Assembly (NCBI GenBank): GCA_964247055.1
Contig: OZ176053.1
Coordinates: 10,974,001 to 11,038,000, forward strand
DNA from: Paragordius varius
Taxonomy: Eukaryota > Animalia > Nematomorpha
Direction of reading: 5' to 3'
DNA length: 64,000 nt
Made by a program: the position numbers and the translations under genes. The notes under the pieces were generated by a model that saw only the letters and a program-made list of their open reading frames with translations, was not told the origin of the DNA and did no database searches. This document shows positions 17,536 to 63,127 of the stretch, piece after piece; within the stretch, counting starts at the first letter, position 1; every line of letters starts with the position of its first letter.

Positions 17536-19451
17536 TGCCAATTTCGTAGTTTATAAAATAAAATGAAATTATTTTGTATCCGATAATTTTTTTAACATAT
17601 TATTAATTAATATGTATTGAGGAGGGGGGGACTGATGCGAGAAACAATCTATTATGAGTAATAAATATAAATTTAAGCCACAAAATTTTAAAAATGGAAA
17701 ATGGAAAATATATTAGTAATATGTATGTATATGTGTTTATTGGTACGTTAATTAAATTGGTTTTAATTAGTGTTTAAAAAGGCAATTTTTTATTTTATTT
17801 TATTATATACAGTTCGTTCGTTTTCGTTCAGATTCGTTATATATACATAAATCTATAAACATATTAATAATTAAATATTATCGATAAAAAATTATTATTT
17901 ATTAATTACCATTTAATTTATGTGTAATAAATTAAGTTAAAAAACGAATAAAATATTAGGATATATATGTAGTTTAATGCCTAAATTTACCATTTAACAT
18001 AGGTGTGCTGGTATTATAATTATATTCGTTAAATGAATTATATTCAATTTAATAAACGGAATACTATATATTTTTGTAAAATATTTTTCCATCGTTATTT
18101 AATTTTACTTGAATTCTCCAATAGTAGAATAATAATTTCATACAGGAACTTTCAACATGAAAATTTTGTTAAATAAACCAAGTTATAAGATAATTGATTG
18201 ATTCAATGTTTGTTTTACTGGTTAATTTAAATAAAAATACCCGTTTTTTCGGTTATTTTTTTAATGAGCAGGATAAGATATATACCATAAATATTATTAT
18301 AACATAAAAACAATAAAATAAAAATTAGTACATACATATTTACGGGGTTAAGGGTCAATTTTTACTGGCATAAATTTTATTTTGTATAATAATATGATAT
18401 GGGGATTAGTTAATAAATGGTAGGGTTGGTGTTAACATTTATATATCTACTAGGTCTGAGTAAAAAACAACATTTATTACTAATAGAGAGAAAAAATATA
18501 TATTTTAACATCTATTAACATTTTAATATCCATCAAACAAAAAAAGATAGTAGATAAGGTAAAATAACTCAAAGATATATCTCTAATGCTGTAATTAATT
18601 TTTTTTAATGTTATTAAAGTAATAAAATTGAAAAATTTAAAGGTTATTATCACATTATATATATTTTCGGTAATAAAAATGCAATATAATAAAATCAATC
18701 AATAAAAATTAAAGATGAGCGCAGGTATATTTTACCGATTTTGAATATTTGTGTTGGTTATTCTTTAATATACGAAAATTAAATTTTAATTAAACGAGTT
18801 TAAAAATGTAATAATTAAGTAATAAATGCATTAAGCAATATTAATTATTTTTTTTAAATAATTAATTGCCTCCTTTAAGCCGTTTAAAGGTGTAAATGGA
18901 GTATTATTAAGTATATTTAATTTATTATTTTACGTTCGCATCTAAAAATATATTTTTGAAATGTGATAATTATTTTGTTTTTATAATCAAAAATTTTCTT
19001 CAAAAATATCATTAAAATTGTCTCAAAACTGTCCAAAAATTTGAAGTAATTTTCCCGAACACTTGAATATTCTAGTTTTTAAAATATTTCACTATATTAT
19101 CCAATCCGATTGAAGTGTTTTTTGTTAAGTTAATTAGCCGACTACCTTTTGAACATTTAAAAATGTTAATTGTAAAATGGCTAATTTATAAAGTATATAT
19201 ATGTAATGAGCGCATCATTAATTATATATATATTAAAGAGGTAATTACTGTATATTATGTGTTATTATATTTTTTTTGCAATTATACAAAATTAAAACAT
19301 TTTATCTTTTTAGTAACAACACACACGCAATTATATGTATATATAATTACACAAAAATTAATTACTTAGATCATTTTATCTATATATTTATGTATGATTA
19401 ATTAACACAAACGAAAATTAATTAAGATAATTATATATGGCCAATATTTTG

Positions 19452-22635: not shown

Positions 22636-24505
22636 CACTGTGCAACACGATTTTTAGACCAGAGTGAAAATTACTACATCTTATAGAGAATTTTTTTCTG
22701 AAAATAATGATATATTTAATATTTTCTTAGCACTTTTTCGCGAGCCGCTAAAAGGTTTCAAAAATCCAAAAACCATCAAAAATGCCTGTTTTTGTAACCC
22801 TATAATTTTTTGAATTTTATAGCTTATTATTTATTTTTTGGAGGATATTACAAATTATATTTTAAAATTCATGTAACATTTTAAAATTTTTAAAAATCTC
22901 TACTACTTTTTGATTTATTTAGAAAAAACGAAACTTAGCTCCAAAAAAATAGCGTTTCAAAACAATGAAAAATTAAGAGACGTGCAGCCACCATACCATT
23001 TTTTATACATAACAAAATAGAAAAATTTAATGTTAATATTAATTAATAAAATGTAAATATTAATTTTAGGATTAAATCAAGTATATTTATAAAATAATTA
23101 ATAAAATAATAAATATATAATATTAATTTGATATATATTATTTATAAATAAGAATTACTTTTAAACATGCAAATTTATTTATATGTATTGTACGTGATTA
23201 TATGAATCATGATATTTTGTTTTTTAATATACGAAAGTTTTTTTCAACAAATAAAAAATATAAACATGCAAATAAATATAAACTGAAATGTTGAACTAAC
23301 AGAAAAGCAAAAAAGGCATTCATTAATAAATAAATTTACTTTAAAATTAATAACAAAAATATATAATAACATAATTGAAATATTAATAAAAATCATATAA
23401 TATTCAAACACAGAGTTTATTATCCATTAACATTAATAAATTTAAAAATATTAAATTTATTATTATAACATTAACACTTCGATTCAAATTGGGGTGTCTA
23501 AATACCCCAGACTAAATTTAAATTAATATTTTTAAAAAAATACTGAAGTAAACGGTCCCAATTTAAATTTATGCTTCTATCCTGATAAAAATTATATAAA
23601 TATGCCATAATATCTTGATAAAATTTTGTTTTGAAAAAAAAGTTCCATCTCAAACTACTTCGACGCCATTTTTATTTTACAAAATTTTTGCAATATCGTC
23701 TTCATTTGATTTTAAGGGTAAAACTAAAGCTAATTTTTTATATAATTTACATCTAACATTGATTGAAATAGAAAAGCGGTTTATTTTGTATTATTTTTTA
23801 ATTTTACAATTTGACACGTGTCACGTTGACGAAATTTTTACCTTTGGGTTTAGCTTAAAATAAGTATTATCAAGTATTTTTGAATAAAATTTTTAATATA
23901 TTTCGGTTTATAAATGTTATATAAGTGCAAAATTTTGCCATGGTTTAGAATATTTCCATACTTTTTAAAGTATTTGTTTTTAAAAAGGCTTGGGGTATCC
24001 AACTACCCCAATTTGAATCGAAGGACATGAGTGTGTTGTATCCAAGTGTTAAATATATATACTATTTTTCATATTTATAAAAAAGCAATTAAATTTTATT
24101 ATTTTAGTAATGTATAATGAAAAGCTGTCAATCAAATGATGCCAGTATGTCTCTTAATTTTTCATTGTTTTGAAACGCTATTTTTTTGGAGCTAAGTTTC
24201 GTTTTTTCCAAATAAATCAAAAAGTAGTAGAGACTTTTAAAAATTTTAAAATGTTACATGAATTTTAAAATATAATTTGTAAAATCCCCCCAAAAAAATA
24301 TAATAAGCTATATAATTTAAAAAGTTATAGGGTTACAAAAACAGGCATTTTTGATGGTTTTTGGATTTTTGAAACCTTTTAGCGGCTCGCGAAAAAGTGC
24401 TAGGAAAATATTAAATATATCATTATTTTCAGAAAAAAATTCTCTATAAGATGTCGTAATTTTCACTCTGGTCTAAAAGAAAAGGATAAAATTTGTTGCA
24501 CAGTG
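22636..24505. mobile_element. Non-autonomous CACT-ended DNA transposon with ~345-bp TIRs and TTA TSD (CMC/Chapaev3-like)
   Basis: Flanks read tta|CACTGTGCAAC ... GTTGCACAGTG|tta. 22660-22980 is a near-perfect reverse complement of 24150-24478. Confidence 0.85.
23475..24048. mobile_element. piggyBac-like MITE nested in the CACT element
   Basis: Flanks read ttaa|CACTTCGATTCA ... TGTATCCAAGTG|ttaa. There is a perfect 19-bp internal inverted repeat (23477-23495 / 24005-24023) at asymmetric distances from the two ends. Confidence 0.8.
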
Positions 24506-29013: not shown

Positions 29014-30762
29014 ATGAATCTCATATTTGAATATAAAAAACTTTTTTTCTTTTTACTAACTTTTATTATAATTTATTTTCTCTATACAAATTTTCCATTA
29101 AATTATAAGGTCATTCCCTATAATTTTTTTGTTGAAGAAAAGGATTTAAAATATTACTGTAATTTTAATCCAATCTCTCAGGATGATTTAGATGGTATAA
29201 TTTTCCAATATATTACTTTAGGGACCAAAATTTTTGGTTATGAATTGGTTGATACGCACACTATTTTAAGGCACGGTGATCGCATGTCTATAATGTTACC
29301 ATCAGAACTCGATAACCTTTATTTTAACGAACTAAAATATTTTAACTGTTATGGTAACTTAAATTCACAAAGTTTTGGAGATAACATTCATAATATTAAT
29401 CAAAATCTTAAATATATAAAGGCTGTTCACAAAAACTGTCCAGTTCCAGGAGACTTAACTAATATTGGTATATTGCAAAACATAAAAATCGGAAATTACT
29501 TTTCCAAATTGTATGGCAATTCTCATAACAATCAACATTTTAATTATACATTTCGTACAACAAAATTTACACGAACTTATTATGGGTTAATTGCAATTTT
29601 GTCTGTTATGTTATCAAACTCCAAAAAATACATCGACCAAATACGTTTTCATGAGTTGCATACTTTTTGCGACCTCAAAACGAACAAATTTTGCTATAAA
29701 TCAACAACAGAAAAGCTTTACAAAAAATTTAATCGAGATTGGGTAGCTTTTAAAAAGCATCCGTCTAGCTTTTATCAAAAATTTTTACAATCTGAAACAT
29801 TTATACGTTATAGACAAATCTTGTTCCCTGACCTCTTTAAGGATGAAATCAGGCCTAAAACGTTTTTTGATACACTAATACCACCCTTTTGTCGGTACTA
29901 TGCTCAAAAAGCGATTGATCAAGGTGCAATCTATGATACACCACAATTTTCTTCTGGAGTGTTTGGGGGACCAGTACTAAATAGTCTGCTTTGGACTTTT
30001 CGCTTTATTCAATCTTTTTATAATCGTGTGATACTTTTTCTACGATATCCAGATCGTAATAATGGAGTAGAGTTGTTTAAGCCATCTCTTTGTCGCCGCT
30101 CATTAATAAAATCAGGCAAAGAGGTGAAGTATGATTCACAAGTGTGTTTAAAACGCGAAGATATTAGGTCTCTAGTGCAAGCTATAAAATCGGAACATGA
30201 ATATACCATATATCATTCGGCTTTTCAAGCATTTAGTTATGACCAAATACGCATACTTCTCCAACACATTGTTAATTCTATGACCTCAAAATTAGATTCC
30301 ACCAATTCCGGTGTTGAACGAAACGTTGAAATATTTTCAGCCCATGATACCACATTATTACCATTGTTAACATTTTTTAACATGTTTTTGAATGTACCCG
30401 ATTTCCATTTAATCCCATACTCATCACGGTTAACGTTTGAATTATGGGTACCTCAAGGGAATTACCTATCCAACCCCAATAATAATTTTGTCTGTCATAA
30501 CATGATAAATGATGTTAAAAATTTTACCAATCATGATATCCTTACAAATTGGGCATTAGTCCGAATATTATATAATGGTCAAATTTTAACGCCAAAAACC
30601 TCACTTGTTAGATATAATACTATATGTCATCATAGTATTCATAATGCTAAACAAAATCAAATTGAAGGGACTTTATCATTGACACTATTCCAAAGAATGA
30701 TAATTAAACCTCATATATTTTTAAATGAAAAACTTGGAACCGTATTCAAAGATATTTATTAA
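29014..30762 (+). CDS. PXYLP1: Histidine acid phosphatase, 2-phosphoxylose phosphatase (PXYLP1/ACPL2)-like; single exon, N-terminal membrane anchor
   Basis: 582-aa ORF with a hydrophobic N-terminal segment (LFFFLLTFIIIYFLY), YELVDTHTILRHGDR (RHG motif), GDLTNIG, and FSAHDTTLLPLL (HD motif). Orthology versus other branch-2 acid phosphatases needs a phylogeny. Confidence 0.75.
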   Translation: MNLIFEYKKLFFFLLTFIIIYFLYTNFPLNYKVIPYNFFVEEKDLKYYCNFNPISQDDLDGIIFQYITLGTKIFGYELVDTHTILRHGDRMSIMLPSELDNLYFNELKYFNCYGNLNSQSFGDNIHNINQNLKYIKAVHKNCPVPGDLTNIGILQNIKIGNYFSKLYGNSHNNQHFNYTFRTTKFTRTYYGLIAILSVMLSNSKKYIDQIRFHELHTFCDLKTNKFCYKSTTEKLYKKFNRDWVAFKKHPSSFYQKFLQSETFIRYRQILFPDLFKDEIRPKTFFDTLIPPFCRYYAQKAIDQGAIYDTPQFSSGVFGGPVLNSLLWTFRFIQSFYNRVILFLRYPDRNNGVELFKPSLCRRSLIKSGKEVKYDSQVCLKREDIRSLVQAIKSEHEYTIYHSAFQAFSYDQIRILLQHIVNSMTSKLDSTNSGVERNVEIFSAHDTTLLPLLTFFNMFLNVPDFHLIPYSSRLTFELWVPQGNYLSNPNNNFVCHNMINDVKNFTNHDILTNWALVRILYNGQILTPKTSLVRYNTICHHSIHNAKQNQIEGTLSLTLFQRMIIKPHIFLNEKLGTVFKDIY

Positions 30763-31022
30763 ATTAGATTTACATGTAGATTATGTATCATTAATGAAAT
30801 TTATTTAATGTTTCAATGATCTGATCGCAATTTGAAGCAGTTCAACTTACAATGATTTTTTATTGAATTGCGTTGCCATTGAATAGATGAAATTTAATTA
30901 TACTAATGTGCTAACCTTTAGCCGTACTAAAAAATTGTTAATTTCAAAACAGACAATTATAAAAACATTTACTAAGGCCAACGGTAAGTTCGATTTGGCC
31001 TAAAATAATATTACAAGAATTA

Positions 31023-32305
31023 CACTAAACAACAAATTTTTCTGCCCTTCGAGACTTTTGCATTTTCTGATAATTACAATCATTTTATCAGTAAATCTAA
31101 ATAAAAATTAAAATTTCACCTAAGAATTTGTATATTTTTTGATTAATTTTAGTAAAAAAATTTTCTTTGAAAATATACAACAAATATCCATTTTTAAAAA
31201 AACATTTGAAAGAGTAATAAAAACTTTATAAAATGCATACTAGTAAGTTTTACATCGATAGTTAATATTATAGAAAGCGACAAACGCGCTAAGCGAGAGC
31301 ATTTTTCTTAATTAATGGGTCGAGTGATAAAAAAATTTTTTTGACTTGACTTGCAAGTTTTTCAAGTCAAGGCTTGCTTTCATGTGATAAAAAAATTTAA
31401 CATTACACGACTTAAGTCAAGCAAGAAAACTTGATTCGGAGGGGATAAAAATCATATGATCAAGTAAAACTTAAAGATTTTTCAAGTGTGGTGTAGGGCA
31501 CACTTGACAGATCTAAAAATATGGATACAATTATTTTGGAAACTATTTATGTTAACCTATTAATTGGGTGGATACAAAAGGGGATAAATTTATAGAAAAA
31601 CTCTGCTCCTATTTAAGTACATGGCATATAAAAATATGCTAAATATATCAATTCCGTAAACGAAAAAAAATGGATTCTCGAAAATTTCTTAAAATTAATA
31701 ATTAAATTTAAATCTTGTAAAATTTCAAATCATCGTTTATTAAATGCTAAAGGTTACTTCACTATCTAATGTAAAGAATTTATTTCATCATAAATTTATT
31801 TCGAATGTAAGGTTGATAATCAATTAAAATAAATATTATGTTATATTGTAATAAACATCCTCCAATTATATTTTCAAATGGACTCCAAACATAATGAGTA
31901 GTGTGGTAAAATAATAAAAGTGTTTAAAGGGCGAATGGTTCATCAAAAATTATTACCAGGCTTAATATTTAAAAACTCTATAATATTAAATAAGATACGT
32001 GCTAGTGAGTTTAAAAAACTTCAAAAAATGCATATTGTATTAATTGTTTTTTTGTGCCATACATTCAATTTTGGTTGATAATGATCAAAATAATTTACGT
32101 AAAATTCGAATTGGGTGGCAATAAAAATGTTACATTCATAAGCAAAAGACTTGACTTAAGTGTTTTTATCATCAATCTTCAAGTGTACACTTGCTGGCTT
32201 AAGTAAACTTGCTCAACTTGCCACGCTTGACTTACAAGTCAAGTGAGACTTTTTTATCACTCCACCCAATATATTAAAACTAATGGATGAAAATAGCTCA
32301 AACTT
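31023..32305. mobile_element. Truncated copy of the CACT/TTA element, opposite in orientation to the 35446-36536 copy and interrupted by a GGG-ended element
   Basis: Begins tta|CACTAAACAACAAATTTTTCTG. 31023-31312 and 32271-32305 are reverse-complement matches to 36536 down to ~36180. Confidence 0.75.
31317..32267. mobile_element. 951-bp non-autonomous TIR element with AAT TSD (PIF/Harbinger-ISL2EU-Spy superfamily-like)
   Basis: Flanks read aat|GGGTCGAGTGATAAAAA ... TTTTTATCACTCCACCC|aat (16/17 TIR match). Many subterminal ACTTGA/TCAAGT motifs occur at both ends. Confidence 0.8.
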
Positions 32306-32309
32306 TTTT

Positions 32310-35300
32310 ATTCGCTGTTTCAGACGGTACTGCATACAGTTCTTTCTTATAAAAAGTCAATATATTTCATGGCTTGTCAAATGATCAAGAAAATGAAAAA
32401 AAGGCTTTGATGCATAAATCAAACTAATTTTTTAAGAGCAAATAAATAATATAGATTTTTATTTACGTATGATGAATAAATAAGAATGTCAAACCATAAC
32501 TTTTTACGAAAAATAAAATTCTATCATATTTTTAAATTATATTTATAAAGAAAGCTATACTTTGTCACATGCTGCTCTCACCGTCGAAACAAGTATTGAA
32601 GAAAATAATTAATATACTAATAAATTTATTTAATTACTAAATTCAATTCAAGTCAAACTTTATTTCATTATTATTATTTGATACAATCACAATTGCTTGA
32701 ATTGCAAAATCAAATATATTCCTAGTTTTTTAATTTTTAATAGCTGCACATAAAGATTTGTAATAAAGCTTCCCGTTTTGATGATAACATTATTAATTGG
32801 TAAGGCATAAATTTCTGTTTTAATTGGATAATTGGTCAGTAGTCTTAATTAACAATGATGTTTAAATAGTTAACGTTGAACTTTCTCTTTGCGATTTTGT
32901 TTACGCATATGATGAATATACCGGATTTAATCTATTCCGAACCTTACGCTTTATTATTATAGGCTTTAACGTTCAATTTATGTGGTATGTTGAGAACGGC
33001 ATGTTTTTTTAATAACTTTGGCATATTTTCAGATAATTTTTTATAAGTAATAAAGAACGCTTTTTAAGGGCTTTTTGCATCCCGGGCTGACCATGATGAT
33101 GAAATATTGCGCAGTTTGTGTACATTATATTGTATTATAATTATCAACACCGATATGATGGTGCTTTAGTATAAAAATTATATATGTCCTATTTAAAATC
33201 TAAAATAATTAAAGTTAAATTTATGTTTAAACACATCCAGAAACAATTCTTTGTTTTAATTTATTGAGCTTCGTGTTCATTTTGATAGTGATAAAGATTA
33301 CGCGCATTAATATAATTTGTTCAAAACAAATCATTTTGTTTAAATTCCACCTAGTTTATCATGTATTATCTAATTAATTATATAATTAAAATATACGCAA
33401 CATTGATGATTCCTGCCTATTTAACTCAGTTTTCCCGGCCGGTTCTGTAACTACAAAATAAACAAAAGTTCGCATATTAAAGTTAAACTTAAATGTGTGC
33501 CCGGCATAATTTTTTTTAAAAGCAGTGTCTGATAATTCCGAAGCTTTAAACTATATTAGCAATTTATTAAAGCTTTTTCAATTGTAATAAAAGTTTTTAT
33601 CTAATATATAAATTAAATATATGCGGGTAAAAAGGTTCCTTCATTTAAACAAATGCAAGAATCGTTTTGAAATCGTTCTAATGATTTTTCTAACGTTTAA
33701 TGAATGATAAATTTTAGCGTAGAAGATTATTATCACGCAATCTCTGCCTTTTTGTTTATTTGAAAAAAAATGCCTACTTTTAAGAGAGAATCAAGATCAT
33801 CAAGGATTACATTTTAAAATTTGAATATACCTAGAACACATAAAAAATTCAAGTTGTTAACCAATTTTTTTAAATATCTTTATTTTATTTTGCCCTAATT
33901 TTATTCCACAATGAAAATAAATTTAATTTTGATAAACATTTTAAAGTTTATTATTTATTGATAAATATATAATTTAATCAACAATTGTTTTTTTGCAAAA
34001 ATCAAAGTTTATATAAATTAAGGTATAATGGGCATTATAGAGTACTTATTTTAAGAACATCCGCCGTTACTAATATTGTGAACTATATTTAATGACAAAA
34101 CCCAAAATATTTACAATGATGACCGTTTAGTAAAACTTAAATATCATATATAACATTAACGTCGGCAAATAGCTCAAAATAATTTAGTTAATCCATAATG
34201 TCATTGAATTCAGATTATTGTTTACATAGGCTCCCGGTGTGAAAATGTTTCTACACTTTGTAATTAATGTTAGTGAAAGGCGGGTTGGTTTTATGTGGAG
34301 TCAAATTATCCTTTAGTTAAACCTTTATCAGATTATTTTATATGTCTATTTATTAAGGTTTAACCGGTTTTTAAAAGAGTTCAAAAATGCAGGAAAAAAG
34401 CGGATGCAAAACAAAATGTTAGAGGATCATTTATACAATTACACAGATTCAACGACAAACATAAAAGGATTATGAAGACTACCTAAAAATGCCAAGAATA
34501 TGGAAAACAATAAGGTTTAAGGAACCAATATTCCAATCTAAATTCATAACCTAATCCCAATTATCAGCACAAAAGACTAAAGCGGAGAAATGAAAATTTT
34601 ATGCAAAGAAACAGAAGTAAAAGAAAATTGGAATTCGCCCAAAACTATGAGCAAACGAATTAGCTAAACCAATTTATAACAAGTCAACGGATTTGACAAT
34701 AACCTTATAATCATACGATCCATACATTTGGATGGAGTGCCTAAAGATTGAGTATCATCCGCATATTTTCTATTATACAAAGAAAACGCTTATATATTAA
34801 ATTGTCCCATCATAAGCCATGCTAGTTAGATTATATAACACTTCGAATATTAAGCAGTTGGAAATATTTACAAATCTATCGGTTTTTAAGGGATAAAAGT
34901 ATAAGCATTATATGAAAAAAAATTCAAACTTCCAGAGTGTACAATGCATGCCATTTATAGACTAAAGGCTCCAATTGTGCTACAGGAAGCTTCAAAGATT
35001 CAAGAGGTAGGTATAATTGCATTTTAATTATTATTTATATGCAAGATAGCGATAATTAGATACTAATAATTTGCTATCAACCAATTAATTGTAACATAAA
35101 ATGTGAATCTAACAATTTAATTGTCATAACCTCAACAATATTTTTTATAGCTACTAGGTATTGCGAGACCTTGTAAAAAAAGATTATCCTAAGAAGTGAT
35201 AACATTGGAAAACATTATAAAATTAATAATTATATATGATGGGACTTTCTGAATTTAAACGGACTAACACGTTTTTTGGAAAGTTTCAAACAACAATTCC

Positions 35301-38300
35301 TTTATATTTACATCGTAAGATATCAATCACAATTTTAGGACATCTATGCAGGAATAACGAAAATTACTTAATGAATTTAAAAAGACAATAAATACACAAA
35401 CTATATGGTATTAATTATTATTTTTATTGTAACAGCGGTATATTACACTAGACAACAAATATTACCTTTTTTAACAGACATTCTTGTAAATTTAAAATTT
35501 ATTTCATAAGTACATAATTAGATATCTGAAAAGAAAATTGGTCTAGCATGCAAACATTTTTTTATATTAGAGTTTATCGTAATTTTTGGCCCCGATTTAA
35601 CATTAAACTCAAAATTTCGAAAATTAAAAGTTTTAGATATGAAGCCATTTATTTTATATCATTCGAAAGAGCGCAAAAATCTGCATTTTTTAAATGGTAG
35701 TAAGTTATTTAAATCAATCGGATGTAAAAGTTATTTAGATTTAAATGGTCGAAATCTTCAATCCTTTAATAAGTCAAGCATTTTCACAGACAAACTAATT
35801 TGAAAATCATATAAATTATTTTAATATAATTTTTAGGATATTAGTATTTAATTAAAGAAAAATATTTGAAAAAGCTTTTGGTTTGCTTTTTTAAGTAAAA
35901 TTATTATTATCATAAATATTTTACCTAGTGGATACTATAGTTATAACTGTAAATTTATTCATAATGGCTATAAAAGATCAAAAATACCTTAACCTTTGTT
36001 TATATCTTTAAAATTTCTCAGCCTCGTAAAGAAAATAAATTAATATTGATGAGATGGTAATTTTTAAAAAACAAAAAACTTAAAAATGGCTGTTGAGTGA
36101 TATAAAAGCAATAAAACAAAGTTTTAATCAAAAAAATTTCTTGTGTTTATCTTTTTTGGACATTCATCAACATTTAAACAAAGTTTGAGCTATTTTCATC
36201 CATTAGTTTTAAAAATAATAATTAAAAAAAATGCTCTCGCTTCGCGCGTTTGTCGCTATTTGTGTTCATTATTAACTGTCGAAGTAATACATATTAGTAT
36301 GCATTTTATAGAGATTTTATTACTCTTTAATATTACAAATGGGCATTACTTGTATATTTTTAAAGTAAAACATTTTTTAGCAAAATTTTGATAAAGAGGG
36401 CGCATAATCAAAAATATCAAATCATACAAAATTCTTCCATCGAGTTATAATTTTTATTTCAGATTTACTGTTAAAATGATACTAAATATCAGAAAATGCA
36501 AAAAACTCGAGTGACAGAAAAATTTGTTGTTCAGTGTTATATTACAATAATGGGGAGACATGGTTAGTATAGCTAAAATCATTAACAATATAATTTTAAT
36601 AAAGCGGGTGGAACCGTGGTTTACTTTTGAGATTGATATTTGAGATGTGCAATATATGAATAATAATAGCAAAAACTAAATATTATATTTTTTGATTTAA
36701 ATAGTTAAATAAATATTTAATGTTTTATAGATGTGTGTTTTCCTCTCCAACGTCCAATCAATGCAACGCCAAATCTAAAATCCATTATAAAACAAAAAAA
36801 TGGATTAGATTTGGTAAAAAATATTTGTCACCTAATATATTAAAATCATCTTTTCAACTTTAAATATAATATAATTATTTTAATTAAAATAATGTATTAC
36901 TTTTGCCCATGGCTTCCCCAATCAAAGCATATTTTTGCCAGCGCTAAAAGAATCGCTTAAAAAAATTTGGGGTATTCCAAGTAATCGCGTTTTATTCGAT
37001 GGATTTATTATTGTCGATAATGATTCCTTTTTTAGGATTGCGTTTGGGTTTTCAATTATTCTATTTAAGGCATTCTCACTTTCACCTGTGTTTGCTTTTG
37101 CCATATTGTATATTCCAGATCTTATGATTTAATTCTCGGCCAATGTGGGATGAATTTCGTCTGTAAAATTGGTGGTTTGATCATGTTTATTAAGCTGAGT
37201 TCTTCAAGTCGGATTGAATGAACTTTTTTAGGACAACGTTTGGTTTGTCAATCATTCCATCTAACCCATTCTCACTTTCACATGTGTTTGCTTTTGCCAT
37301 ATTGTATATTCCAGATCTTAATTTAATTCCCGGTCAATGTGGATGAATTTAGTCCGTAAAATTGGTGGTTCGATCATGTTTTCCATGCTGAGTTCTTCAT
37401 GTCAGATCGAATGGACAAATTCATGCCACATTGGCCGAGAATTAAGTCAAGATCTGGAAAATACAATATGAAAAAGAAAATACATGTGAAAGTGAGAATG
37501 CTGGTGAAGGCATGATTGACAAATCAAAACGCAATCCTAAAATAAGGGATGATTATCAACAATAATAAATCCATCGAAAATAACATTCCAATTACTTGGA
37601 ATTAACGCAATTTTTTTTAAGCGATACTTTATTTTACGTAAGCGCTGGCAAAAAAATGCTTTGATTGGGGAAGCCATGTTTATTATTTAAAAAATTATAT
37701 TACAGTTAAAGTTGAAAAAATTAATACCAAATCTAATCCATTTTTTGTTTTACAATGGATTTATTTGGCGTTGCATTGATTGGACGTTGGAGAGGAAAGC
37801 ACACATTTATAAAACATTAAATATTTATTTAACTATTTATATCTTAAAATATATTATTTGAAATGTTTTTGCGTTTATTATTATTATTCTCCTCATATAT
37901 TGTACATCTCGATTATCAATCTCAAAAGTGAACCACGGTTCCATCCATGCCTTGCTAAAATTATATTCTTAATGATTTCAACTATACTAACCCTGTCTTC
38001 CCATTGTTGTGATATATTATACCGCTGTTTCAATAAAAATAATAAATAATATTTTTTATATCTATTGTCTTTTTACATTCAAAAAGTTATTTTTTGTTTA
38101 CATTTTTTGGCTTCCTGCATTATAGATATCTTAAAATTGTGATGTAAATACAAAGGAATTGTTGTATTGAAACTTTCCAAAAAACGTGTTGGTCTGTTCA
38201 AATGCAAGAAAGGCCCAACATATATAATTAATAATTTTTAAAATGATATTTTTCCATCGTTATCACTTGTTGTTATGATATTTTTTACTAAATCGGTTAT

Positions 38301-40710
38301 TAATTATTTACAAAAATATCTAGTAGCTATCAAAAATATTTTTTAGGTATGAAAATTAAATGTTAGATTCACATTTTATATTACAAAATTGGTTCAGAGT
38401 TAGCAAATTATCAGTATCTAATTATTGCTATCTTGCATATAAATAATAATTAAAAATGTAATTATACCTACCTCTTGATTCTTTGAACCTTCTGTAGTAT
38501 AATTGGAGCCTAAAGCGCATGTATTGTACACTCTAGAAGTTTAAAATTTATATATTATTTCTTATATTTTTATCCCTTAAAAACAGAATTATTTGTGGAT
38601 ATTTCCGATTGATATATTTATATGCAACATGTTTTAAATAATAAGTTCAATCTAACTAGCAGGGGTTATGATGGCTTTTCGATAATATTAACGATTTAAT
38701 ATATATAACCCTTTTTATTAGAATGTATACGGATGATGCTCAATCTTTAAGCCATTCCCATTTCCCAACTTTCGATTATATTGTGTAATAGTATATAAGG
38801 TTGTCAAATCTCGCCAACTTGTTGTGTATTTGTAGAACTAATTCTTTTGTTCATAGTTTTGGGCAAATTCCATTTTCACTTACTTCTGTTTGCATATATT
38901 TCATTTCTCCGCTTTAGTCTGTTTTAGTATTCAGGATTAAGTAATGAATTTTAATTAAAGTATTGGTTCCTTAAACCTTTGATTGTTTTCCATATTGCTG
39001 GCTGTTTAAGGTAGTCCTCATAATCCTCCTATGTTTATCATTCAAGCTCCATGATATTTAATTATCCCCCTATAGCTTTGCTTTTCTGCTCTTTTTAAAC
39101 AGTTTTATGAGATTAGGTTGAACCTTAATAAATGAACTTATATCTGATAAAGATTATAAATTATAGGTCACATCTTGATCGCATGTCTCAATACTATTAT
39201 ATATTTAATGATATGAAAGATTAACTTATGGTTTATGTTGAGCGATTTGCAAGCGCTAAAATATATAATATTTTATTTTTCCTATCATCATTGTGTTTAA
39301 TGGTGGTCACTAAATATATTTCACTAATATATAGCATTAACAGCTCAAATCGATTTGATAAAGGACATTAATTTATAAGAAACAAAATTTATACGAGATA
39401 TGTGGGATTTAATTAAGAAATGATTGCAACTTGATTTTTTACAAGTTTTCCTACAATTTAATTTTTAGATGCGAGTCGTCTTGAATTTTTCGCTTTCTAA
39501 TAAAATGGGCTAGTCTTTTAAAGTAAGACACGGAAAATAAATTTGCAGATAAAATTATATAATGTTTTCAAGAGTTAAATGATTCATCATTAGTGTACAT
39601 GTACACCTCGTGGTGATACAACACATCCCGATAAGTTCCATTTTCAATTACCATGTTACCATATTTGAAAACTTCCTTCAAATAGGATTCAAAATAAAAA
39701 AATTAAATAAATATAACATTGTCTCCAATCCAAAAGCACTAGAGGATTATTTAATTAGAATACTCAAATATTTAATTAAGACAACCGAAAATGTATACTG
39801 TCTCATCGAATTTTGTTTAATAACAAACGAATATTATTAGCCATAATCAAGTTAATTTATGATAAAGTCATTCAAAAATATTAGTAACCATAGTAGTATG
39901 AATATTTATAACCTTGTCTCATATAATATTTGATGGCCTAAAGTTGTTCAAGTCCACACTCGATGTATCGGGATGCGTTTAAATTGAAGTAAGCATTCTT
40001 TGGTTTATAGGATGTGATGAAACACTCATTTTTTTAAAAAAAGTATAATATAACCAGGCAGCCATATTTTATATACAATATGCGTAAAAATACATTGCTT
40101 GTAAAACATAAACTGCCAGATAACATGTAAAATAAACATTGTTTTAGGCTTATTGGTGCATATGAACAGGGACTTTATCGTTTTTTCTTGTTTCTTAGTG
40201 CAAAAATTATTTACTAAAGATTGTTATTAATATTAAAAACTGAAACATAAATGTATAAACTAGGAGATATAATTAATTAAATTAACTACGAGAGCAGCCG
40301 TAAGTCAAATTTATGGTCAGGTAGATAGGATTACGACAACTGTTTATTTAGGACAAAAATATCCAAAACAAATGGTTTCAAAGGGCCCCATCTTAGATTC
40401 AAAAAATCCGACGGGGTTCGCTGGTTATAAACAAGTATTTATCACTATTTATTTTAACAATATTTGCTATGATTGGGAAAATATAATAAAATTTTTTTTA
40501 GGGAATTAAATTTATTTAGATTATGTCAAATTTTTTATAAAATATCTCGCAAGCTGCAGGATTTTGGACTAAATCACTTATTTTACGCTCAAATTTTGAT
40601 AAATAGTTTTTGTTTATCAGGTATTGTATTTGACAACATGAAATGAAATCTAAAACCCTAAAATATATGGAGTATCCTACAATAAAAGTTAGCATACCGT
40701 TACAGTGCCG
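32310..40710. repeat. Giant diverged palindrome (fold-back); arms ~32310-37350 and 37417-40710, 66-nt loop
   Basis: Collinear reverse-complement anchors: 36610/37945, 36740/37790, 36930/37660, 37100/37460, 35435/38025, 35270/38170, 35060/38410, 34990/38480, 34500/38990, 34340/39130, 34090/39315, 33850/39435, 33080/39975, 32720/40262, 32575/40285 and 32370/40635. Confidence 0.85.
35446..36536. mobile_element. 1,091-bp CACT-ended non-autonomous DNA transposon with TTA TSD, inserted in the left palindrome arm
   Basis: Flanks read tta|CACTAGACAACAAAT ... ATTTGTTGTTCAGTG|tta. The right arm shows the empty site at ~38000-38027. Confidence 0.88.
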
Positions 40711-41199
40711 ATTTTATACCTACTTTTGATTATTGATATTAGTTTAAAATTTCGATAAATTTTTTTATGCTCGAATTCTATGGTTTTTAAACAACTAAAG
40801 CTTTCTTAACATTAGATATTAGAAATAGAAGACATATTTTAATTTTATATTTATTGCATACATGATGATAAAAAAATCGAATATAAATTTCTTTATTATC
40901 TTTTTGCTTAAGAAATGCATCTTTTTGTGTAATGTTTAAATTAAGAATTATTATTTGATTCTTATACTATACTTTATTCTGTAAATACGAATCAAATATT
41001 GTTAAAAATATTTTAAAGATCAATAAACTTTACTCCGCCATATAGGTCGCAAAATAAATACGAGAAATATAGTATTATAAACGCAAATATCAAAAGCGTC
41101 CTCTAAAATTTGATCAACATCTTTATGTAATTTGAACTTGGTTATAGAAGCTGAGGGACGATATATATGAATAGAAGTATTAAACCTAAACTTGCATAT

Positions 41200-42070
41200 T
41201 AATAGCTTATGGTTAAACACGGACATTTTCCGAACGACCAAGGATCTGTAAGCTGCCTGAAATTTTAGTTGGAAGGCGATGTTTCAACAAAGTTGCGCGA
41301 TGCATTTTTAGTTGGTTTTACAAATCAAAGTTGAGAGATACAAAGAGAGAGAAGAGAGTAGGTGCAAAAGAAGAAAAAAGTTGCATTTCTATGACACTCT
41401 GTCGAAATAACTTATTCTTAACAATTACAGAGAGTAAATGCTTAAACAACAACCAAAAAAAAACATAACAATAATAAATGAATATTTTATAATACGAAAA
41501 GCCCTCAAGTAAACCAATAATGAAATGATTAAAAAAATCATGTGTATTCTGGTAAATGGTGGTACCTCCACCGTCCTTTTCATTGTCCAGCGAAAGGTAA
41601 AAAGGGACTCATGTGCCACAGATCACTTCGGCAGTGTGTGCAGGGCTAGTCGATGACCGGGAAATATAATTCGCACAATGTTGGGGGTGACTCCGCGAAG
41701 CAGAATAAACAGTGTCAGATGATATTTGATACCGGAACGAAGGTATTAATCATCGGGAAAAGGGAATAAGAGGTCAATGGTAAGCCCAGATCTACACCAA
41801 CGATCCAGTTTAAAAGCTAAGCTAAAGGATTGTGTGCCACAGTCAAGGAAAGAGCGCGTCTTACCCTGTAAGCTCGCCAATATAATTCGTCAGCCATTAT
41901 GGAACTAATTGGATGAGGGCACTCCAGTTTGATATCCTAAAAACGTACACGTATATATAATACCATGGATAATAGATTGATTTTTGAATTTTACAGCCAA
42001 ATGGCAACGTTCACTATCCTATTGATAAATTATTGATTGACCCGAAGTCCCAGTCATTTCCATGTCATCG
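41200..42070 (-). mobile_element. Degraded 3' end of a non-LTR retrotransposon (I-group-like)
   Basis: Minus-strand fragments (NDWD, CRSGLT, PPTLCEL, CTHCRSDL) loosely resemble the I-group C-terminus (W..WD...RLRIGH...PP.C..C), followed by a pyrimidine-rich 3'-UTR-like tract. The sequence is heavily disrupted. Confidence 0.4.
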
Positions 42071-51103: not shown

Positions 51104-54100
51104 ATGTTAGCAATATTTATTTTGTCTATAAATATTTTTTTCTGTCATTCCTTGGATAGCGAAATTTTGACCAATTCACAAGTAAATACGTATACTATAT
51201 TGCCACAACATTTATTAGGAAAAAAATTTCTTGTAATTAATCACTTGTATTTTTTCAAAGTTATCAAATTTACTTATTTATTATTAAAATCTCTTTTTTT
51301 GCTGTAAATATTCATATTGCCAATTTGAGATTTAAAAGTTAATATATCTTACCAAATTAGATACGATCGTATTTTTGTTTTTCGTAAAGATGTAAAGCGG
51401 TAACAAATGATTAAAAGACTTGCTCTGTCTTAACAAAAAATGGAGAAAGCTGCTTGTTTGCCCTCTCTATAATTTTTTTTTCTTTTGTATCCCTCACTAT
51501 TTGATGCGAATTTCTTTTTCTTTTTGAGGTTGCAATCGTAAATAGAAAACCGTTTTGCAATGTCACTAGTCATAATTTATTTTACTCCGATTTTCACAAA
51601 CCAATTATAAATCTTTTAGCATATAAGTACTTACTGTGTTTATCCTACAGTTTATAAAGATCGATATACCATAATCAAAGGCTTCGTTTTATATTCGCTT
51701 TAGATGATATAATATTACAATACTTTTTTATAGCAAAAATTAAATCTTTAGACAAATAATTTATTTAAAAATAATTGTCAAATATACATCCAATAAATAG
51801 TTGAGTGATGTGGTTAAGATAAAGTATAATATCAAGCAATGAGGCAAAATTACCCATGTTTAAAATTTTATTTTTTGCAGGAACAATTCATAAAAAATAT
51901 TCGAGGATATCCATACGAAAAACATAAAGTTATCACTCAAGATGGTTACATAATAACACTTCATCGAATTTGTCACAAATGCAGTAGGTATGATGGAAGA
52001 AATAACCTATCAAATTTTTCTGAAAGAAAAAAAAGCCATAAACCCGTCATATTTCTTTTGCATGGGTTACTGAGCAGCTCCTTTGATTTCATTATAAACT
52101 ATTCCAATCAAAGTTTGGGTAATTTATTTCGTATCAGTTTATAGAATTAATAATATTTTTTAAAGAAAATGTATGAAACCTAAAAAATTCTTTAGCTAAT
52201 ATATTGCCATTGTTATAATATAAAGAGGGAGAACAGGATCGGTTTTTAATTACATGTATTTATTATGTAATCAAACACGGATGGATGCAATTTGTGCGAA
52301 AAATGCACACTACGTCATTGATTGTGCGTTGGTCATTAAGGCTAACTAAATATATTTAGCCTTTTCGTATAAGATAACAAATTAGCAGAATCTCCAAAGT
52401 GGTAAAGGGGCGTGATGATTTAATTTCTGATAATTATAACATCTCATTTTCATTAGCCCCAGAATAACCATAAATCTTCCTTTAAAAAACTGAAGATAAT
52501 TTTCGTTAATAAATCTTTACACAATTTTTTGAAAAAAATAACGTTTTTTAGAAATTGGCTTTGTTTTTTGCTTTAAGGTAAATATTTAATTGTTCGATAT
52601 TTATACAAAAACTGATTTTTACCAGAAATATTGATTGAAGAAACATAAACAAAAATGCCAAACTTACAAGAGCTATTTAATTGAAATTACTTGTGAATTT
52701 AAATACGCTAAAAGATCAAATAAAGCAAATCTTCAATAAAGTTGTTTTATATACCAGTCATAAAGCGCTTTGAAATTGGAGATGCGTTTATAGTGGTTTT
52801 TTAGAAAAAAACCTTTTAAGCGGTCCTGATTATGGCAATAGGCCCTAAGCCGTGGTTTCTGCAAAAAAATTTAAAGCCTATCAAGGTTTCCAAGTTCCTT
52901 CATTTAAAAATACTAATATTCGACCATAGCAGATACGATTTTTTGGCATCTGTAGTTATGACACATCCTCTAAATTAACTTAACTCTAGCATAATTTTTT
53001 AATATTGAGATCTTTAAGCTGAAACACTATCGTTTTAATTGGAATTGGGTTAATTATATTATTGGTGAATTTAATGTTTAAAATAAATTTCTAATTTCAA
53101 TATTAGCTTATGTACTTGCGGACGCTGGATTTGATGTTTGGTTGGGAGATTGTCGAGGTAATTCATATTCATTAAAGCATGTTCGGATGAATAGTAAAAA
53201 CGATGATTTTTGGGAATGGAGGTATTTAAAAATATTTTTATTATGTTATATATATATATATATATATATATGTAATTCAACAGATCGGAGTATTCATAAT
53301 ATGTTATCAACTAAGCTTTTTGTATGATTTTCGGGAATGAATTTTTAAGCAACATAACTTTGTATTTGACTATCATACGCTTTTAAAGCTAGGAATGGGG
53401 GTAGAAACCTAATCAAGCTGTAGTTTTGCCTTTTTATAATTAATTTGGTAACATTTACAATATTTTGCAACAAAAAGTTATGATGAAATAGCACGATACG
53501 ATGTTCCAGCCTTCATCAATTACATCTTGAGTGCAACTAAACGTAAACAATTGTACTATGTTGGCCATTCTCAGGGATGCAGAGTGGCATTGGCCTATTT
53601 TGCTGGGAAGTATGAGGAGGCTCAGAAAATTCGTTTGTTAATTTGCCTAGCACCAGCAATCTATTTAGCAAACGTGCTATCTCCCCTTAAAAACGTGGGG
53701 CCTTATCTAAGAACCCTTAAATTTTTCACAAATTTAAATGGAGAAAAGGGCTTCCTAATTGGATCACAACATAATTTTTTTAAGTCCAAATCTCTCATAT
53801 CTGCATTTTGTCCCAAACCCATAAAAGATATTTGTCAAAATTATTTTATAGCTGGTGGTCCTGACACAGGAAACATTGATCAAGTATAATTAACATTAAT
53901 AATAATATTCTGCTGTGTAAACATAAAATTATATTTTATTATAAAATTTTAAAAATACACAGAGAAGGAGGGACATTATCCAAAGTCACGTGCCTCAGGG
54001 GACTTCTTTTAAAAATTTGGAACATTACATGCAAGCATTGTCAAAACCCGGATTCCCAATGTTTAATTATGGTAAACGCGAAAATTTGAACAGATATAAA

Positions 54101-54641: not shown

Positions 54642-57600
54642 TTAAACCATGCCATTCATAAATTCAATTATTTTGACATAATAATCCTTAGGGGCATTCG
54701 TTCCGTAAGTAAAATCAAAATGATTTGCGTTTTCGAATTTATAGTTGCCCACAACTTTATGCAGTTTAGGTATGAGTTTTTCGACATCAATAGGATCAGC
54801 TAACCAATCTTGCGTGCTCCAAAACAAAATGGTTGGGACATTCATTTTGGTTAAATCGTATTCTGGTGCCTGGAGCTATATTAATATTAAGTTAAATTAA
54901 TATATTTGTGAAAATATTTTTATGATCTATCATTCAACTACAATAAACATTAAGCCCGATTGTAAGAAAACTACCTGAATTTTCTACATCATGATGTCTA
55001 ATAATCTATATATTTATAAAAATAGAAAATGCTGGCTTTGTGATCTGTTTCCGGAAAACCGGTGGTTTTTTTGAAGGTCCACAAAAATCCGGAAAACGTG
55101 TTGGGCCATTCGATAATGTGATTTTTTTAATTATCTTGGACTAAGCCGAGCATATTCGGCTCGCTTTTTTAATTTAAGCCCTCTTTTACCCACTCCCCCG
55201 TAAAATGCCATTTTTTTCAATAAAGTTCACAAAAATAATTTTTTGAATCTATTTTACGCCCTAGGTCTGAAACCGTAAAAATGTAATGAGGTTTTCTGGT
55301 ATTCCCTGTTAAAATGAAAAGATTATGATCAAGCCTTTTTATATTGGCTACTGGGTAAGTAGAGACCCGCTAAAAACTGCCCCGTCCTATTGAAATAGCG
55401 TGCCTTTGGGGCTAAATTTCATAACACCTATCAGGCCATATAAGTTAAAAAGGGCTTGAAATATTACCTAACAAGGCAAAATTTAGTTCACGCGGGTTTA
55501 TAAAATTAGATGTTAATTAGGCCTTTCACGCCCTGAAAAATGCGCCACCATAGATTTATTTTTTAGTTTTGAGATAATTTTTGCAAAAACTAATGAGAAC
55601 ATATGGGATCAATTATCATTCCAGGTATTTTCCGTAAAAAGGCAATTTAAATCAAGCGCTTTTTTTGTATCAGCCTCTGGGTTGGAAGCTACACGCCTAA
55701 AACTGCGCCACCTCGATATTGCGTTGTTTAGGATTTAATTTTCAGAAAACTTATCAGGCCATATGAGTTCAATAAGGGCTTGAAATATTACTCGTAAAAA
55801 TTACATCTCAAAAATATTTGAGGTGATGATGGAACTACCAAAGGGCTACCCAAAACAAAAATTTAAGTTTATCGGTTTTTTAAAATTAGGGGTTAATTAG
55901 GCCCTTTACGCCCAATGCCCTATGATTGAACTATTATTTAGTTTTAAAGCCATTCTTCCAAAAAACTATTAAGAACATATGGAATGAACAGGTATTACCC
56001 TATAAAGAAATAATTTTTACAAACGTCTTTTTTTATTGGCCTCTGGGCAGGAGGCTACCCGTGTAAAACTGCTTCATCATATCGATAAAACATGCCTTTT
56101 GAGCCAAATTTCATAAAAACCTAGAGACTAATAGGAACATATGAATCCATAATAATTCTAAATATTCACATATAAAGGCATTCCCAACGCTTTTTTATAC
56201 CTGCTCCTGGGTAAGAGGCTACCGGCCAAAAACCGCGCCCCTATATAGAAATTGCGTGGTTTTGGAACTAATTTAAAGAAACTTTATGAAGCCATATCAC
56301 CTTATTAAAATCTTAAAATGTTACCCGTAACTAGGTAAAAATTAAGGTCGGGTTTTTTTATTAGCCGTTAATTTGGGGTCTTTGTGTTTTAAAAATACGC
56401 CATTTTATAACGATTATTTAGTGTGAGGTATTTTCGAATAACCCATGAGACGATGGTATTAAAGATGATTCCAAATATTTGCCCTATAAAGGCAAATTTA
56501 ACTCAGCGCTTTTTCCATATAGGTTTATTAGTAGGGGTCTACCGGTTTAAAACTGAGACGCTATAAAAAATGGCGTGGTTTTGGAGCTAATTTTCAAAAA
56601 ACTTAAGAAGCCATACGAGTTCAGTCAAACACATTTCTGGAGAATTTGTATAATATCATTCTATCCTTTAAAAAGGAACCGCAAAGGATCTATTTTTAAT
56701 ATCCCTTGATCCCAGCTGTGTGAATACAATTTTGAAATAAAACTTTTAACCATGATTTCGTAAAAACAAAAATCTTAAAATAAAAATGATAGTTGAATAT
56801 TAACTTTAATAATGGACAGTTTAAATATGGTCAATTTCGAGTAAACAATATTTTGTGCAAAAACCCGTGGAATAATTAAAGACATTCTTTTTATTTAATA
56901 TGTTTTTTATTATTTTTTTATCTCCATTACCTCTATTTATTGCAAATTATTAAGAATTAATATAGGTAAGACTACGCCACAGCGAAGCGTGACAGGGCTA
57001 GCTAGTAAGTATATAAAAGTAAAATTTAATTAAACTTTGATTAATATTAAATTTATTATAATATATAATTATTAGTAATATACTACAAATATTTGGAAAA
57101 CCATAAAAACCCACAAACCTGTTGGGCTGGCGATTAAAAAAGATTTAACAAGACTGCCATTTATTTAGCAATATAACCAATATATTACGTTAACTTTTTT
57201 ACTAACCGCTTTGCGTTTCCTTTTTCCATCAGGCAAATAATATGTAATCCTTTATTATTTAATTTAAAAGCCGTGCTTATATTTTTAGCTATATGTGGAT
57301 TGTAATAATTTTCGAAGATAATCCTTTTTAAACAAAATAAGTTTGAAATAAATGTTAAAATTTGGAATCAAAATATAATAATTTATCTTTATAAACTTTG
57401 ATTTATATAAACAATCATAAATCTTACCTTACCATACTTCTTGAGGTTACCTATGAAACCGTAATCATACATAGAAAATGAACTTTTCATTATTCCTTGG
57501 GAGAAATGAGCTATGTTTTTGACTGACGTACCGGCTGGATAGTGGCCAAAGTATATTGGAACCCGTTTCTAAAAAATATTGATTTATAGCTTTAAATCGT

Positions 57601-61454: not shown

Positions 61455-62560
61455 CTAGCGTAAATCACGTTGCTACGCAGCCCGAGGAAGTCCTTTGACT
61501 TCTGGGGGGGGGGGGGGGTCTATTTGAAAAAAGGGACACTAAAATGATTCACATATGTGGATTATTTCGAAACATTATTTAATAACTATGATCTCATAGG
61601 AATTTTAAAAATGTGCATTCATACTAATTATCGTTTACTTGGGCGAAAAATAGATTCAAAAAATTATTTTTGTGGACTTTGTTTTTTAAAAAAAATGGCA
61701 TATTACGGGGGGGGAGCGGGTAAAACAGGGCCTAAATTAAAAAAGCGAGACGACTATGTTCGGCGCAATCAAAAATAAGTAAACAAAAATCATATTTGAA
61801 ATTGAATGGTCCAACACGTTCTTCGGAAAATTGTCTCAAAGACACGATTTTTGTGGACTTTAATTTTCAAAAAAATTGTTTTGGACACGGGGTGAGCCCG
61901 AACTGGGGGCGCAATTCAAAAAAGAGCGAAGCTATTGTCGGGACATTTATTAATGATTATAATTTTTCGATATTTGGATTTGAATGGGTCTATCGGTTTT
62001 CCGGAATCAGATCACAAAGCTACATGACGGGTCAGTTTTTCGCGGTTAGCTCCTTACCCAGCAGCTATCATCAAAGAAACGCTTGACTAAATTTTTTTGC
62101 CTTTTAACAGAAAATACGTGGAATCCTTATTGAATTTTACGGTCTCATACCTTGGGCGGAAAATAGAATCAAAAAATTATTTTTGTGGACTTATTTTTTT
62201 TAAAAAAATGCCATTTTACGGGAGGAGCGGGTAAAAGAGGGCCTAAATTAAAAAAGCTAGCCGACTATGTTCGGCGCAATCGAAAATAAGTAAATAAAAA
62301 TCATATTTGAAATTGAATGGTCCAACACCTTCTCAGGAAAATTGTCTCAAAGACACGATTTTTGTGGACTTTTATTTTCAATAAAACCGTTTTGTACACG
62401 GGTGGGCCCGAACTGGGGGTGCAATTCAAAAAAGGGCAAAGCTATTGTCGGGGCATTTATTAGTGATTATATTTTTTCGATATTTGGATTTGAATGGGTC
62501 CACCGGTTTTCCGGGAACAGATCACAAAGCCAGCTTTTTCCATTTTTATAAATATATAGA
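61455..62560 (-). mobile_element. Complete 1,106-bp non-autonomous Helitron upstream of lipase 2
   Basis: On the minus strand: a|TCTATATATTTATAAAAATGGAAAAAGCTGG ... GAAGTCAAAGGACTTC (perfect 6-bp hairpin) ... TTTACGCTAG|t. Internal ~390-bp direct duplication (61639-62020 vs 62152-62530). Confidence 0.85.
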
Positions 62561-63127
62561 TTTCACATGCTATAAATAATGTAAAATATAATATAAATAT
62601 GATTAAATATATTGTTTAAACCTATTCTCCAGGTGAATATGTTAGTAGTCCTATCCCCTCTTAAATCGGGGAATTTTTTTCCAAATTCTTTTGGCGGCAT
62701 TAGCAGATCCCGTTTCCAGCTCTTGCTACTTTTAATTCGGTTTTTGTTTCATCATCTAAAGCTTTAAAAGGGATACTTTCTTATTTCTGCAACCAATTAT
62801 TTAATGTGTTAAGCAGGTCTTGAACGTTATATTAGGCATTCCTCATACCAACATCAACATCTTTATTGGTGTTGAAAATTGGAATATTGTTGTAGGATTA
62901 TATAAATTTAATAGTGTTTTAAATAATTCTGAAATACAAGGTTGGATTAATATCTTTTTTTTGTTTTGCCAAACCAGTGGCACCAACTTAGTTTTAAAAC
63001 TTACGTATTTACCTATAGAATTAGCCATAAAGTTACAGTAATTTATATAAAAAAATAGTTTTAGATGATCATCCAAAAAATATAATATATACCCAATCTA
63101 ATCAAAAATGAGAATTTTTATATAGTA

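Follow-up and report, generated by a model that had tools for sequence, protein, structure and literature searches.

The 64,000-nt stretch of the nematomorph Paragordius varius analyzed here (contig OZ176053.1, referred to below as C4, positions 10974001–11038000; hereafter the window) contains a diverged palindrome at about positions 34062–39350. We read this palindrome, with a probability of roughly 60%, as a decayed inverted duplication of ~2 kb of non-coding DNA that arose locally through fold-back copying or template switching and is not a mobile element. As such it is an ordinary old inverted duplication of a known kind. This reading is favored because the arms hold locus-specific DNA, their identity is continuous over the boundary between repeated and unique sequence, no target-site duplication (TSD) accompanies them, and there is no open reading frame (ORF) of more than 82 amino acids inside the palindrome. 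An earlier note on the window, made from its letters alone, had listed an inverted dimer from template switching among several possible origins, and this is the origin that fits best, given unique outer arms of ~1 kb, unbroken identity and an axis at the end of a tandem array. The note also ranked the locus first among the window's candidates for an undescribed element, and our results do not bear this out. All genome-wide comparisons refer to the eukaryotic assembly from which the window was taken, which comprises 110.6 Mb in 44 contigs.

Self-BLAST resolved the arms into two strong and collinear inverted blocks, not scattered short matches: 34445–35445 against 39048–38015 (E = 7e-180) and 36538–37157 against 38016–37417 (E = 2e-149). 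A further inverted match pairs 37226–37355 with 37542–37413. The at least 16 collinear anchors counted previously are matched by our own count of 19 exact, collinear reverse-complement anchors of at least 15 nt, seven of which reach at least 21 nt and the longest 36 nt, compared with one anchor on the direct strand and none in the reversed control. Using gap-tolerant sensitive alignment, we observed that arm homology fades at ~34062 and ~39350, which gives a span of 5.3 kb. The earlier description of an 8.4-kb diverged palindrome at 32310–40710 was thus right about a diverged inverted repeat with a short spacer and too generous about its extent, as the sequence beyond these two points behaves like the controls. 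Between 32000–34100 and 39300–41500, the best local score was 27 for the reverse complement, level with the direct (26), reversed (23) and shuffled (maximum 27) comparisons, and the k-mers common to 32310–34061 and 39351–40710 were equally frequent on the control strands and non-collinear; on these grounds we rejected arms extending to 32310 and 40710. The supposed left end at 32310 marks the border of an inverted fragment (31022–31314 plus 32274–32309) of the miniature inverted-repeat transposable element (MITE) that is also inserted in the left arm.

Two other indications of a longer repeat were also discarded. A weak match between 33292–33394 and 40938–40834 (66%, E = 8e-4) is collinear with nothing else, and a region at C4:10.936–10.938 Mb matches both flanks, but through scattered old low-copy repeats. 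One of these, at 39534–40212, lies a little beyond the right arm, outside the palindrome, and has copies at C4:9377843–9378511 (76%) and C4:10936549–10936748 (80%).

The features of the palindrome, in window coordinates, are the following.

34062–37349, + strand: left arm, 3,288 bp with the MITE and an extra tandem unit, ~2.0 kb without them; outer limit good to ~10 bp
34062–35050, + strand: outer, locus-specific part of the left arm, which pairs with 38365–39350
35446–36536, + strand: MITE in the left arm, 1,091 bp
37027–37222, + strand: tandem unit 1, ~196 bp, a member of a 198-bp repeat family
37223–37416, + strand: tandem unit 2, of which the first ~127 nt pair with the right arm and the last 67 nt form the spacer
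37350–37416, no strand: spacer (loop), 67 nt, single-copy, the tail of unit 2
37417–39350, − strand: right arm, 1,934 bp, which starts at unit position ~128–133 and holds only 0.65 of a unit
37417–38364, − strand: inner part of the right arm, consisting of the left part and array of an old low-copy non-coding repeat family
~38016/38017, no strand: empty MITE site, intact in the right arm and matching the insertion point in the left arm
38365–39350, − strand: outer, locus-specific part of the right arm, which pairs with 34062–35050

Counted over aligned bases, the identity of the two arms is 85% (1,536 matches, 271 mismatches and ~355 gap columns), and it is graded, from 89% in the innermost 1,050 bp to 80% in the 900 bp farther out. 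The excess length of the left arm, 1.35 kb, is due to the MITE and to an extra ~196-bp unit, with two units on the left and 0.65 on the right. A tandem duplication of ~197 bp had been recognized in the left arm before, and it corresponds to the units at 37027–37222 and 37223–37416. As all three units (1, 2 and that of the right arm) are mutually equidistant (88–90%), the extra unit may be a gain on the left or a loss on the right, and it may date from before or after the inversion. No coding capacity emerged when the palindrome, its right flank and one canonical copy of the repeat family were scanned for ORFs and Pfam domains. In agreement with the earlier note, we found no in-register direct repeat of at least 6 nt within ~30 bp of either end of the palindrome; a TSD of 2–4 bp would be unrecognizable at such divergence.

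The composition of the arms carries most of the argument. Contigs C4 and C5 hold ~10 other loci that are similar, at 62–78% identity, to the inner ~950 bp of each arm (on the right, as far as 38364). The canonical layout of this family, best preserved in the C5 copies L034, L035 and L036, consists of a left part, an array of one to six 198-bp units and a right part of ~900 bp, and these three copies contain no ORFs. We found no sequence in the window that matches the right part, which means that the local copy stops short at the palindrome axis. Farther out, each arm consists of ~1 kb of sequence specific to this locus. None of the four furthest-reaching family copies (L034, L035, L039 and L041) matches beyond 38364, and a search of the 110-Mb genome with 38300–39400 recovered, besides the query, nothing but the opposite arm and a single 83-bp piece. 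Across the boundary between the repeated and the unique part, arm identity does not drop but stands at 93% (bin 38317–38466), and one event must therefore have copied both parts together. The arms are also each other's closest relatives, at 85% identity compared with 62–70% to any other family copy. They are copies of one composite local stretch, neither two repeat insertions nor a multi-copy element.

These observations leave two insertions of one dispersed repeat, made independently and in opposite orientation, or an artefact of the assembly, scarcely credible as the source of the palindrome. A dispersed repeat family does account for the inner part of each arm, but the inverted repeat runs ~1 kb past the family homology into unique DNA with its identity undiminished, and each arm resembles its partner much more closely than it resembles any copy elsewhere. 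A fold-back read in the assembly would have yielded near-identical arms, whereas here they lie 15% apart, with many indels and a MITE on one side only; an artefact had been considered unlikely from the outset on the ground that the arms differ. Both explanations are refuted by the unique and diverged outer arms.

Unit number in the 198-bp family ranges from 1 to ~11. In L035 (L035:7873–9068; C5:7383873–7385068), six units are 94–97% alike, a resemblance that suggests recent local amplification. We recognized no terminal inverted repeats (TIRs), Helitron-like ends or TSDs at the ends of the family, which was left unclassified. Its organization resembles that of bivalve MITEs that contain tandem repeats and of the satellite-like arrays associated with Helentrons in these animals (PMC3879986, PMC7492417), with a left module, an array of ~200-bp units and a right module, and with a non-coding, dispersed character and a variable number of units. 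It differs from these elements in lacking definable TIRs, Helitron ends and TSDs and in comprising ~10 loci at 62–90% identity. The likeness is one of layout only and concerns the content of the arms, not the palindrome.

The junction between the arms lies within the tandem array. The left arm runs through the whole of unit 2, ending ...GAATGGAC at 37416, and from 37417 onward the sequence is the reverse complement of the unit from position ~130 downwards (AAATTCATGCC...), which places the inversion junction at 37416|37417. As the left arm is complete through unit 2 and the inverted copy starts only at ~130, the spacer is the unit tail; we measured it at 66–67 nt (37350–37416), in line with the 66-nt loop reported before. 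An inverted microhomology of 4 nt borders the spacer, GTCC at 37351–37354 and GGAC at 37413–37416, one base off the arm register. The DNA fold of the spacer uses this GTCC/GGAC pair, and the fold of the loop alone (z = −1.9) is not significant by itself. Within the unit tail (37368–37412) there is also a short inverted repeat, GTTTAAT...ATTAAAC in L035 and TTCGATC...GATCGAA in unit 2 of the window. Judged from these letters, the 7-bp repeat has been kept through seemingly compensatory changes and may form a conserved small hairpin.

An inverted copy that adjoins the original, with a 67-nt single-copy spacer between them, is the layout of a fold-back. The event behind the palindrome would have begun with an intergenic stretch of ~2 kb, made up of ~1 kb of locus-specific DNA followed by the left part of the repeat and the start of the 198-bp array. 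A break or a stalled fork in the tandem array would have exposed a 3′ end, which would then have snapped back onto the GTCC/GGAC pair, or moved over to the sister template, and served as primer for ~2 kb of synthesis back along its own arm. The stretch would in this way have been copied, inverted, beside itself, with the turn-round at the end of the repeat unit (37416) and the new strand resuming ~67 nt back on the complementary strand, at unit position ~130, so that 67 nt stayed single-copy. A second switch, or end-joining, would have restored the link to the chromosome. The right part of the family could have been lost in the event or have been missing beforehand. Later changes would comprise ~15% substitutions, many indels, the insertion of the MITE into the left arm and the gain of a unit on the left or its loss on the right.

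Fold-back inversions known from yeast chromosome rearrangements (PMC7467729, PMC10622511) and inverted duplications known from humans (PMC3907307), formed by hairpin priming or template switching, share this architecture: a non-inverted copy, a short single-copy spacer and an inverted copy, with a short inverted microhomology bordering the spacer (here 4 nt, weak and perhaps a matter of chance) and with arms made of whatever DNA adjoined the break, in this case repeat plus unique sequence. In yeast, fold-back inversions start from single-strand hairpins with stems of down to 4 bp, and in cells proficient for Mre11 and Sae2 the loops measure 36 nt in the median (PMC7467729); the 67-nt spacer is of a size similar to that of these "large-loop" hairpins. 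Human inverted duplications likewise show a spacer and 2–8 bp of inverted microhomology (PMC3907307). The known cases, however, extend over megabases, are often terminal and pass through dicentric chromosomes before they are resolved, unlike the 2-kb interstitial copy in the window, which is fixed in the germline, ~15% diverged and without a located return junction.

A giant fold-back transposon had also been proposed; the arms would then be 2-kb terminal inverted repeats and the locus the lone old surviving copy of its element. We regard this as improbable. The palindrome does resemble the classical Foldback (FB) transposons in being almost wholly inverted repeat (arms of ~2.0 and ~1.9 kb), non-coding and short-looped, with tandem sub-repeats in its arms, and divergence of the extent observed could have wiped out a TSD only a few bases long. 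Yet the termini bound by a transposase would have to lie in the outer ~1 kb, of which the 110 Mb contain no further copy; no TSD of at least 6 nt stands in register; and the tandem units lie centrally, not along the arms toward the tips as in FB elements. The genome-wide search for further palindromic copies that the earlier note had recommended found the outer arm to be unique and the inner-arm relatives to stand for the most part in a single orientation, their sequence continuing differently on either side. Unlike FB elements, then, the locus is single-copy and shares no termini with its relatives, which are non-palindromic or have other junctions and, at L037 and L052, other arm lengths (see below).

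The one transposon that is present provides a relative date. The 1,091-bp insertion noticed previously in the left arm occupies 35446–36536, is bounded by CACTAG...CAGTG inverted termini and a 3-bp TSD (TTA), and faces an uninterrupted site at ~38016/38017 in the right arm. It is a non-autonomous TIR MITE, CACTA (CMC)- or PIF/Harbinger-like, for which no transposase was found. The family has the termini CACTAGACAACAAAT / ATTTGTTGTYCAGTG (CACTAG...CYAGTG) and at least 1,019 candidates in the genome, the best 40 of which show 89–91% identity, and a 3-bp TSD (TTA, TAA or CTA) flanks all 12 copies examined (loci L023–L033 are among the family copies). Likeness at this level points to a fairly recent burst. 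As the MITE is found in the left arm alone and the right arm retains the empty site, the insertion is later than the duplication; its divergence from its relatives, ~9–10% pairwise, is also below the 15% between the arms. The CACTG-type terminus at which the earlier note had hinted is not a feature of the palindrome; CACTAG is the terminus of this inserted family.

Arrays of the 198-bp repeat switch orientation at three further loci, L052, L037 and L038. At L052 (L052:2812–5962; C5:5385812–5388962), an array of ~3 kb flips once, with ~11 forward units, a spacer of ~88 nt and ~5 reverse units; the spacer corresponds, in reverse complement, to the beginning of the right part of the family, and the arms are ~89% alike. 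This is a second fold-back-type junction, distinct from that of the window. L037 (C4, 8.658 Mb) is a palindrome of ~1.1 kb, centered in a short self-complementary stretch of the unit with almost no spacer, and its arms extend just ~240 bp into the left part of the family. L038 (L038:4040–6560; C4:8968040–8970560) is an array that flips at least four times and includes a higher-order inverted duplication (4375–4986 against 6270–5663, 92%). Arm lengths differ among all of these loci and the window, and the junction positions of L052 and L037 differ from that of the window; repeated accidents therefore fit better than a fixed mobile unit.

The junction of L038 calls for a separate assessment. It joins units tail to tail, its inverted arm begins at most 1 nt from the unit position used in the window, and the alignment of the two loci continues, weakly, for ~22 nt across the junction (65% over 89 nt, E = 4e-5). 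Such a junction could predate the window palindrome, having existed already in an ancestor of the C4 family copies, with the arms kept alike since by gene conversion; the palindrome would then be much older than its 85% arm identity suggests. In favor of this inherited module, L038 carries the junction twice and mirrored, the ~22 nt beyond it are alignable as well, and arm identity in the window climbs toward the center, as conversion in palindromes predicts. Against this, the left side of the L038 junction differs, the preceding unit having an apparent internal deletion, and L038 lacks the ~1 kb unique outer arm and includes just ~330 bp of the left part. The cross-junction alignment is, moreover, short and weak, and inversions could recur at this position on account of the short inverted repeat in the unit tail, a kind of hotspot described for yeast. 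On balance, we consider descent from an inherited junction unlikely.

The hotspot itself is a tentative idea to which we give a low probability: the 198-bp family would carry a built-in site of inversion, with the unit-tail hairpin repeatedly triggering fold-back copying at one nucleotide. It is suggested because two loci match in arm start to within 1 nt and the 7-bp inverted repeat of the unit tail is kept; palindromes of varied size would then have been seeded wherever the repeat sits, here as well as at L038 and perhaps also at L037 and L052. If true, the 198-bp family would offer a natural system in which to follow how short hairpins in tandem repeats seed palindromes.

Several points weigh against a single local fold-back duplication. 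The microhomology of only 4 nt, one base off register, is possibly a chance match after 15% divergence, and the junction falls within ~5 nt of a repeat-unit boundary. Its inverted arm starts at most 1 nt from the unit position used at L038, and the junction may therefore have been inherited, in which case the structure would be older and maintained by conversion. The return junction at the outer end of one arm was not located, and with no outgroup reaching past 38364 either arm may be the original; as to a single-arm ancestral state, the comparison covers one genome assembly only. Finally, the gradient from 89% to 80% identity is unexplained by a single event unless gene conversion is added. 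The higher identity near the center does suggest some arm-to-arm conversion after the duplication.

A third origin put forward for the palindrome was a hairpin-RNA locus, a source of endogenous small interfering RNAs. A putative transcript through both arms would form a duplex to be diced, and the small RNAs would act on the repeat family or the MITE. The central 991 nt are predicted to fold as RNA at −382 kcal/mol, compared with −208 kcal/mol for shuffled sequences (z = −20), seven perfect duplex runs of 21–36 nt are present, and arm sequence is common to ~10 other loci. The long non-coding inverted repeat, its short loop and the predicted long RNA duplex are also features of Drosophila-type hairpin-RNA loci. 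The arms of those loci derive from and target protein-coding genes, and they keep high complementarity. Here, by contrast, the arms consist of repeat and unique non-coding DNA in decay and match only non-coding repeat copies and no gene, as there is no ORF of more than 82 amino acids and no Pfam match. The duplex is just 85% matched and is interrupted by ~355 gap columns, a one-sided insertion of 1.1 kb and an unpaired extra unit, and decay of the arms at such a rate speaks against selection on pairing. We give a small-RNA role a very low probability. The structure most likely has no function today.

The persistence of the palindrome is less puzzling than it might appear. A spacer of tens of bases already lowers hairpin extrusion, and the 15% divergence, the indels and the 1.3-kb asymmetry of the arms remove most of the remaining risk of instability; palindromes are evidently tolerated by this genome. 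Taken alone, the locus matters little, as the neutral relic of a known accident of replication or repair. It nevertheless offers a clean and datable germline case of a small interstitial fold-back duplication, in which the MITE and its empty site serve as an internal clock, and it indicates that palindromes in this genome are not all foldback transposons.

The palindrome lies in a part of the window that is poor in recognizable genes. The window has a G+C content of ~28% and sparse ORFs, among which Pfam searches identified a homeodomain ORF at 16657–17541 (− strand, E = 1e-13), a histidine phosphatase branch 2 ORF at 29014–30762 (+ strand, E = 1e-10) and lipase / alpha-beta hydrolase exons at 51839–52144 and 53527–53889 (+ strand, E = 2e-21 and 1e-4). 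Between the ORF end at 30762 and the lipase exons from 51839 lie ~21 kb without recognizable coding sequence, which house the palindrome. Its description as lying in gene-free DNA is reasonable on this evidence, though small exons could escape recognition. Rfam and tRNA scans of the whole window returned zero matches. Other repeats in the window include an inverted pair at 22652–23031 and 24088–24478 (391 bp, 91%, with a spacer of ~1 kb), a set of inverted blocks at 55003–56616 and 62026–64000 (6–7 kb apart, 78–95%) and a direct repeat at 61638–62020 and 62151–62530 (383 bp, 91%).

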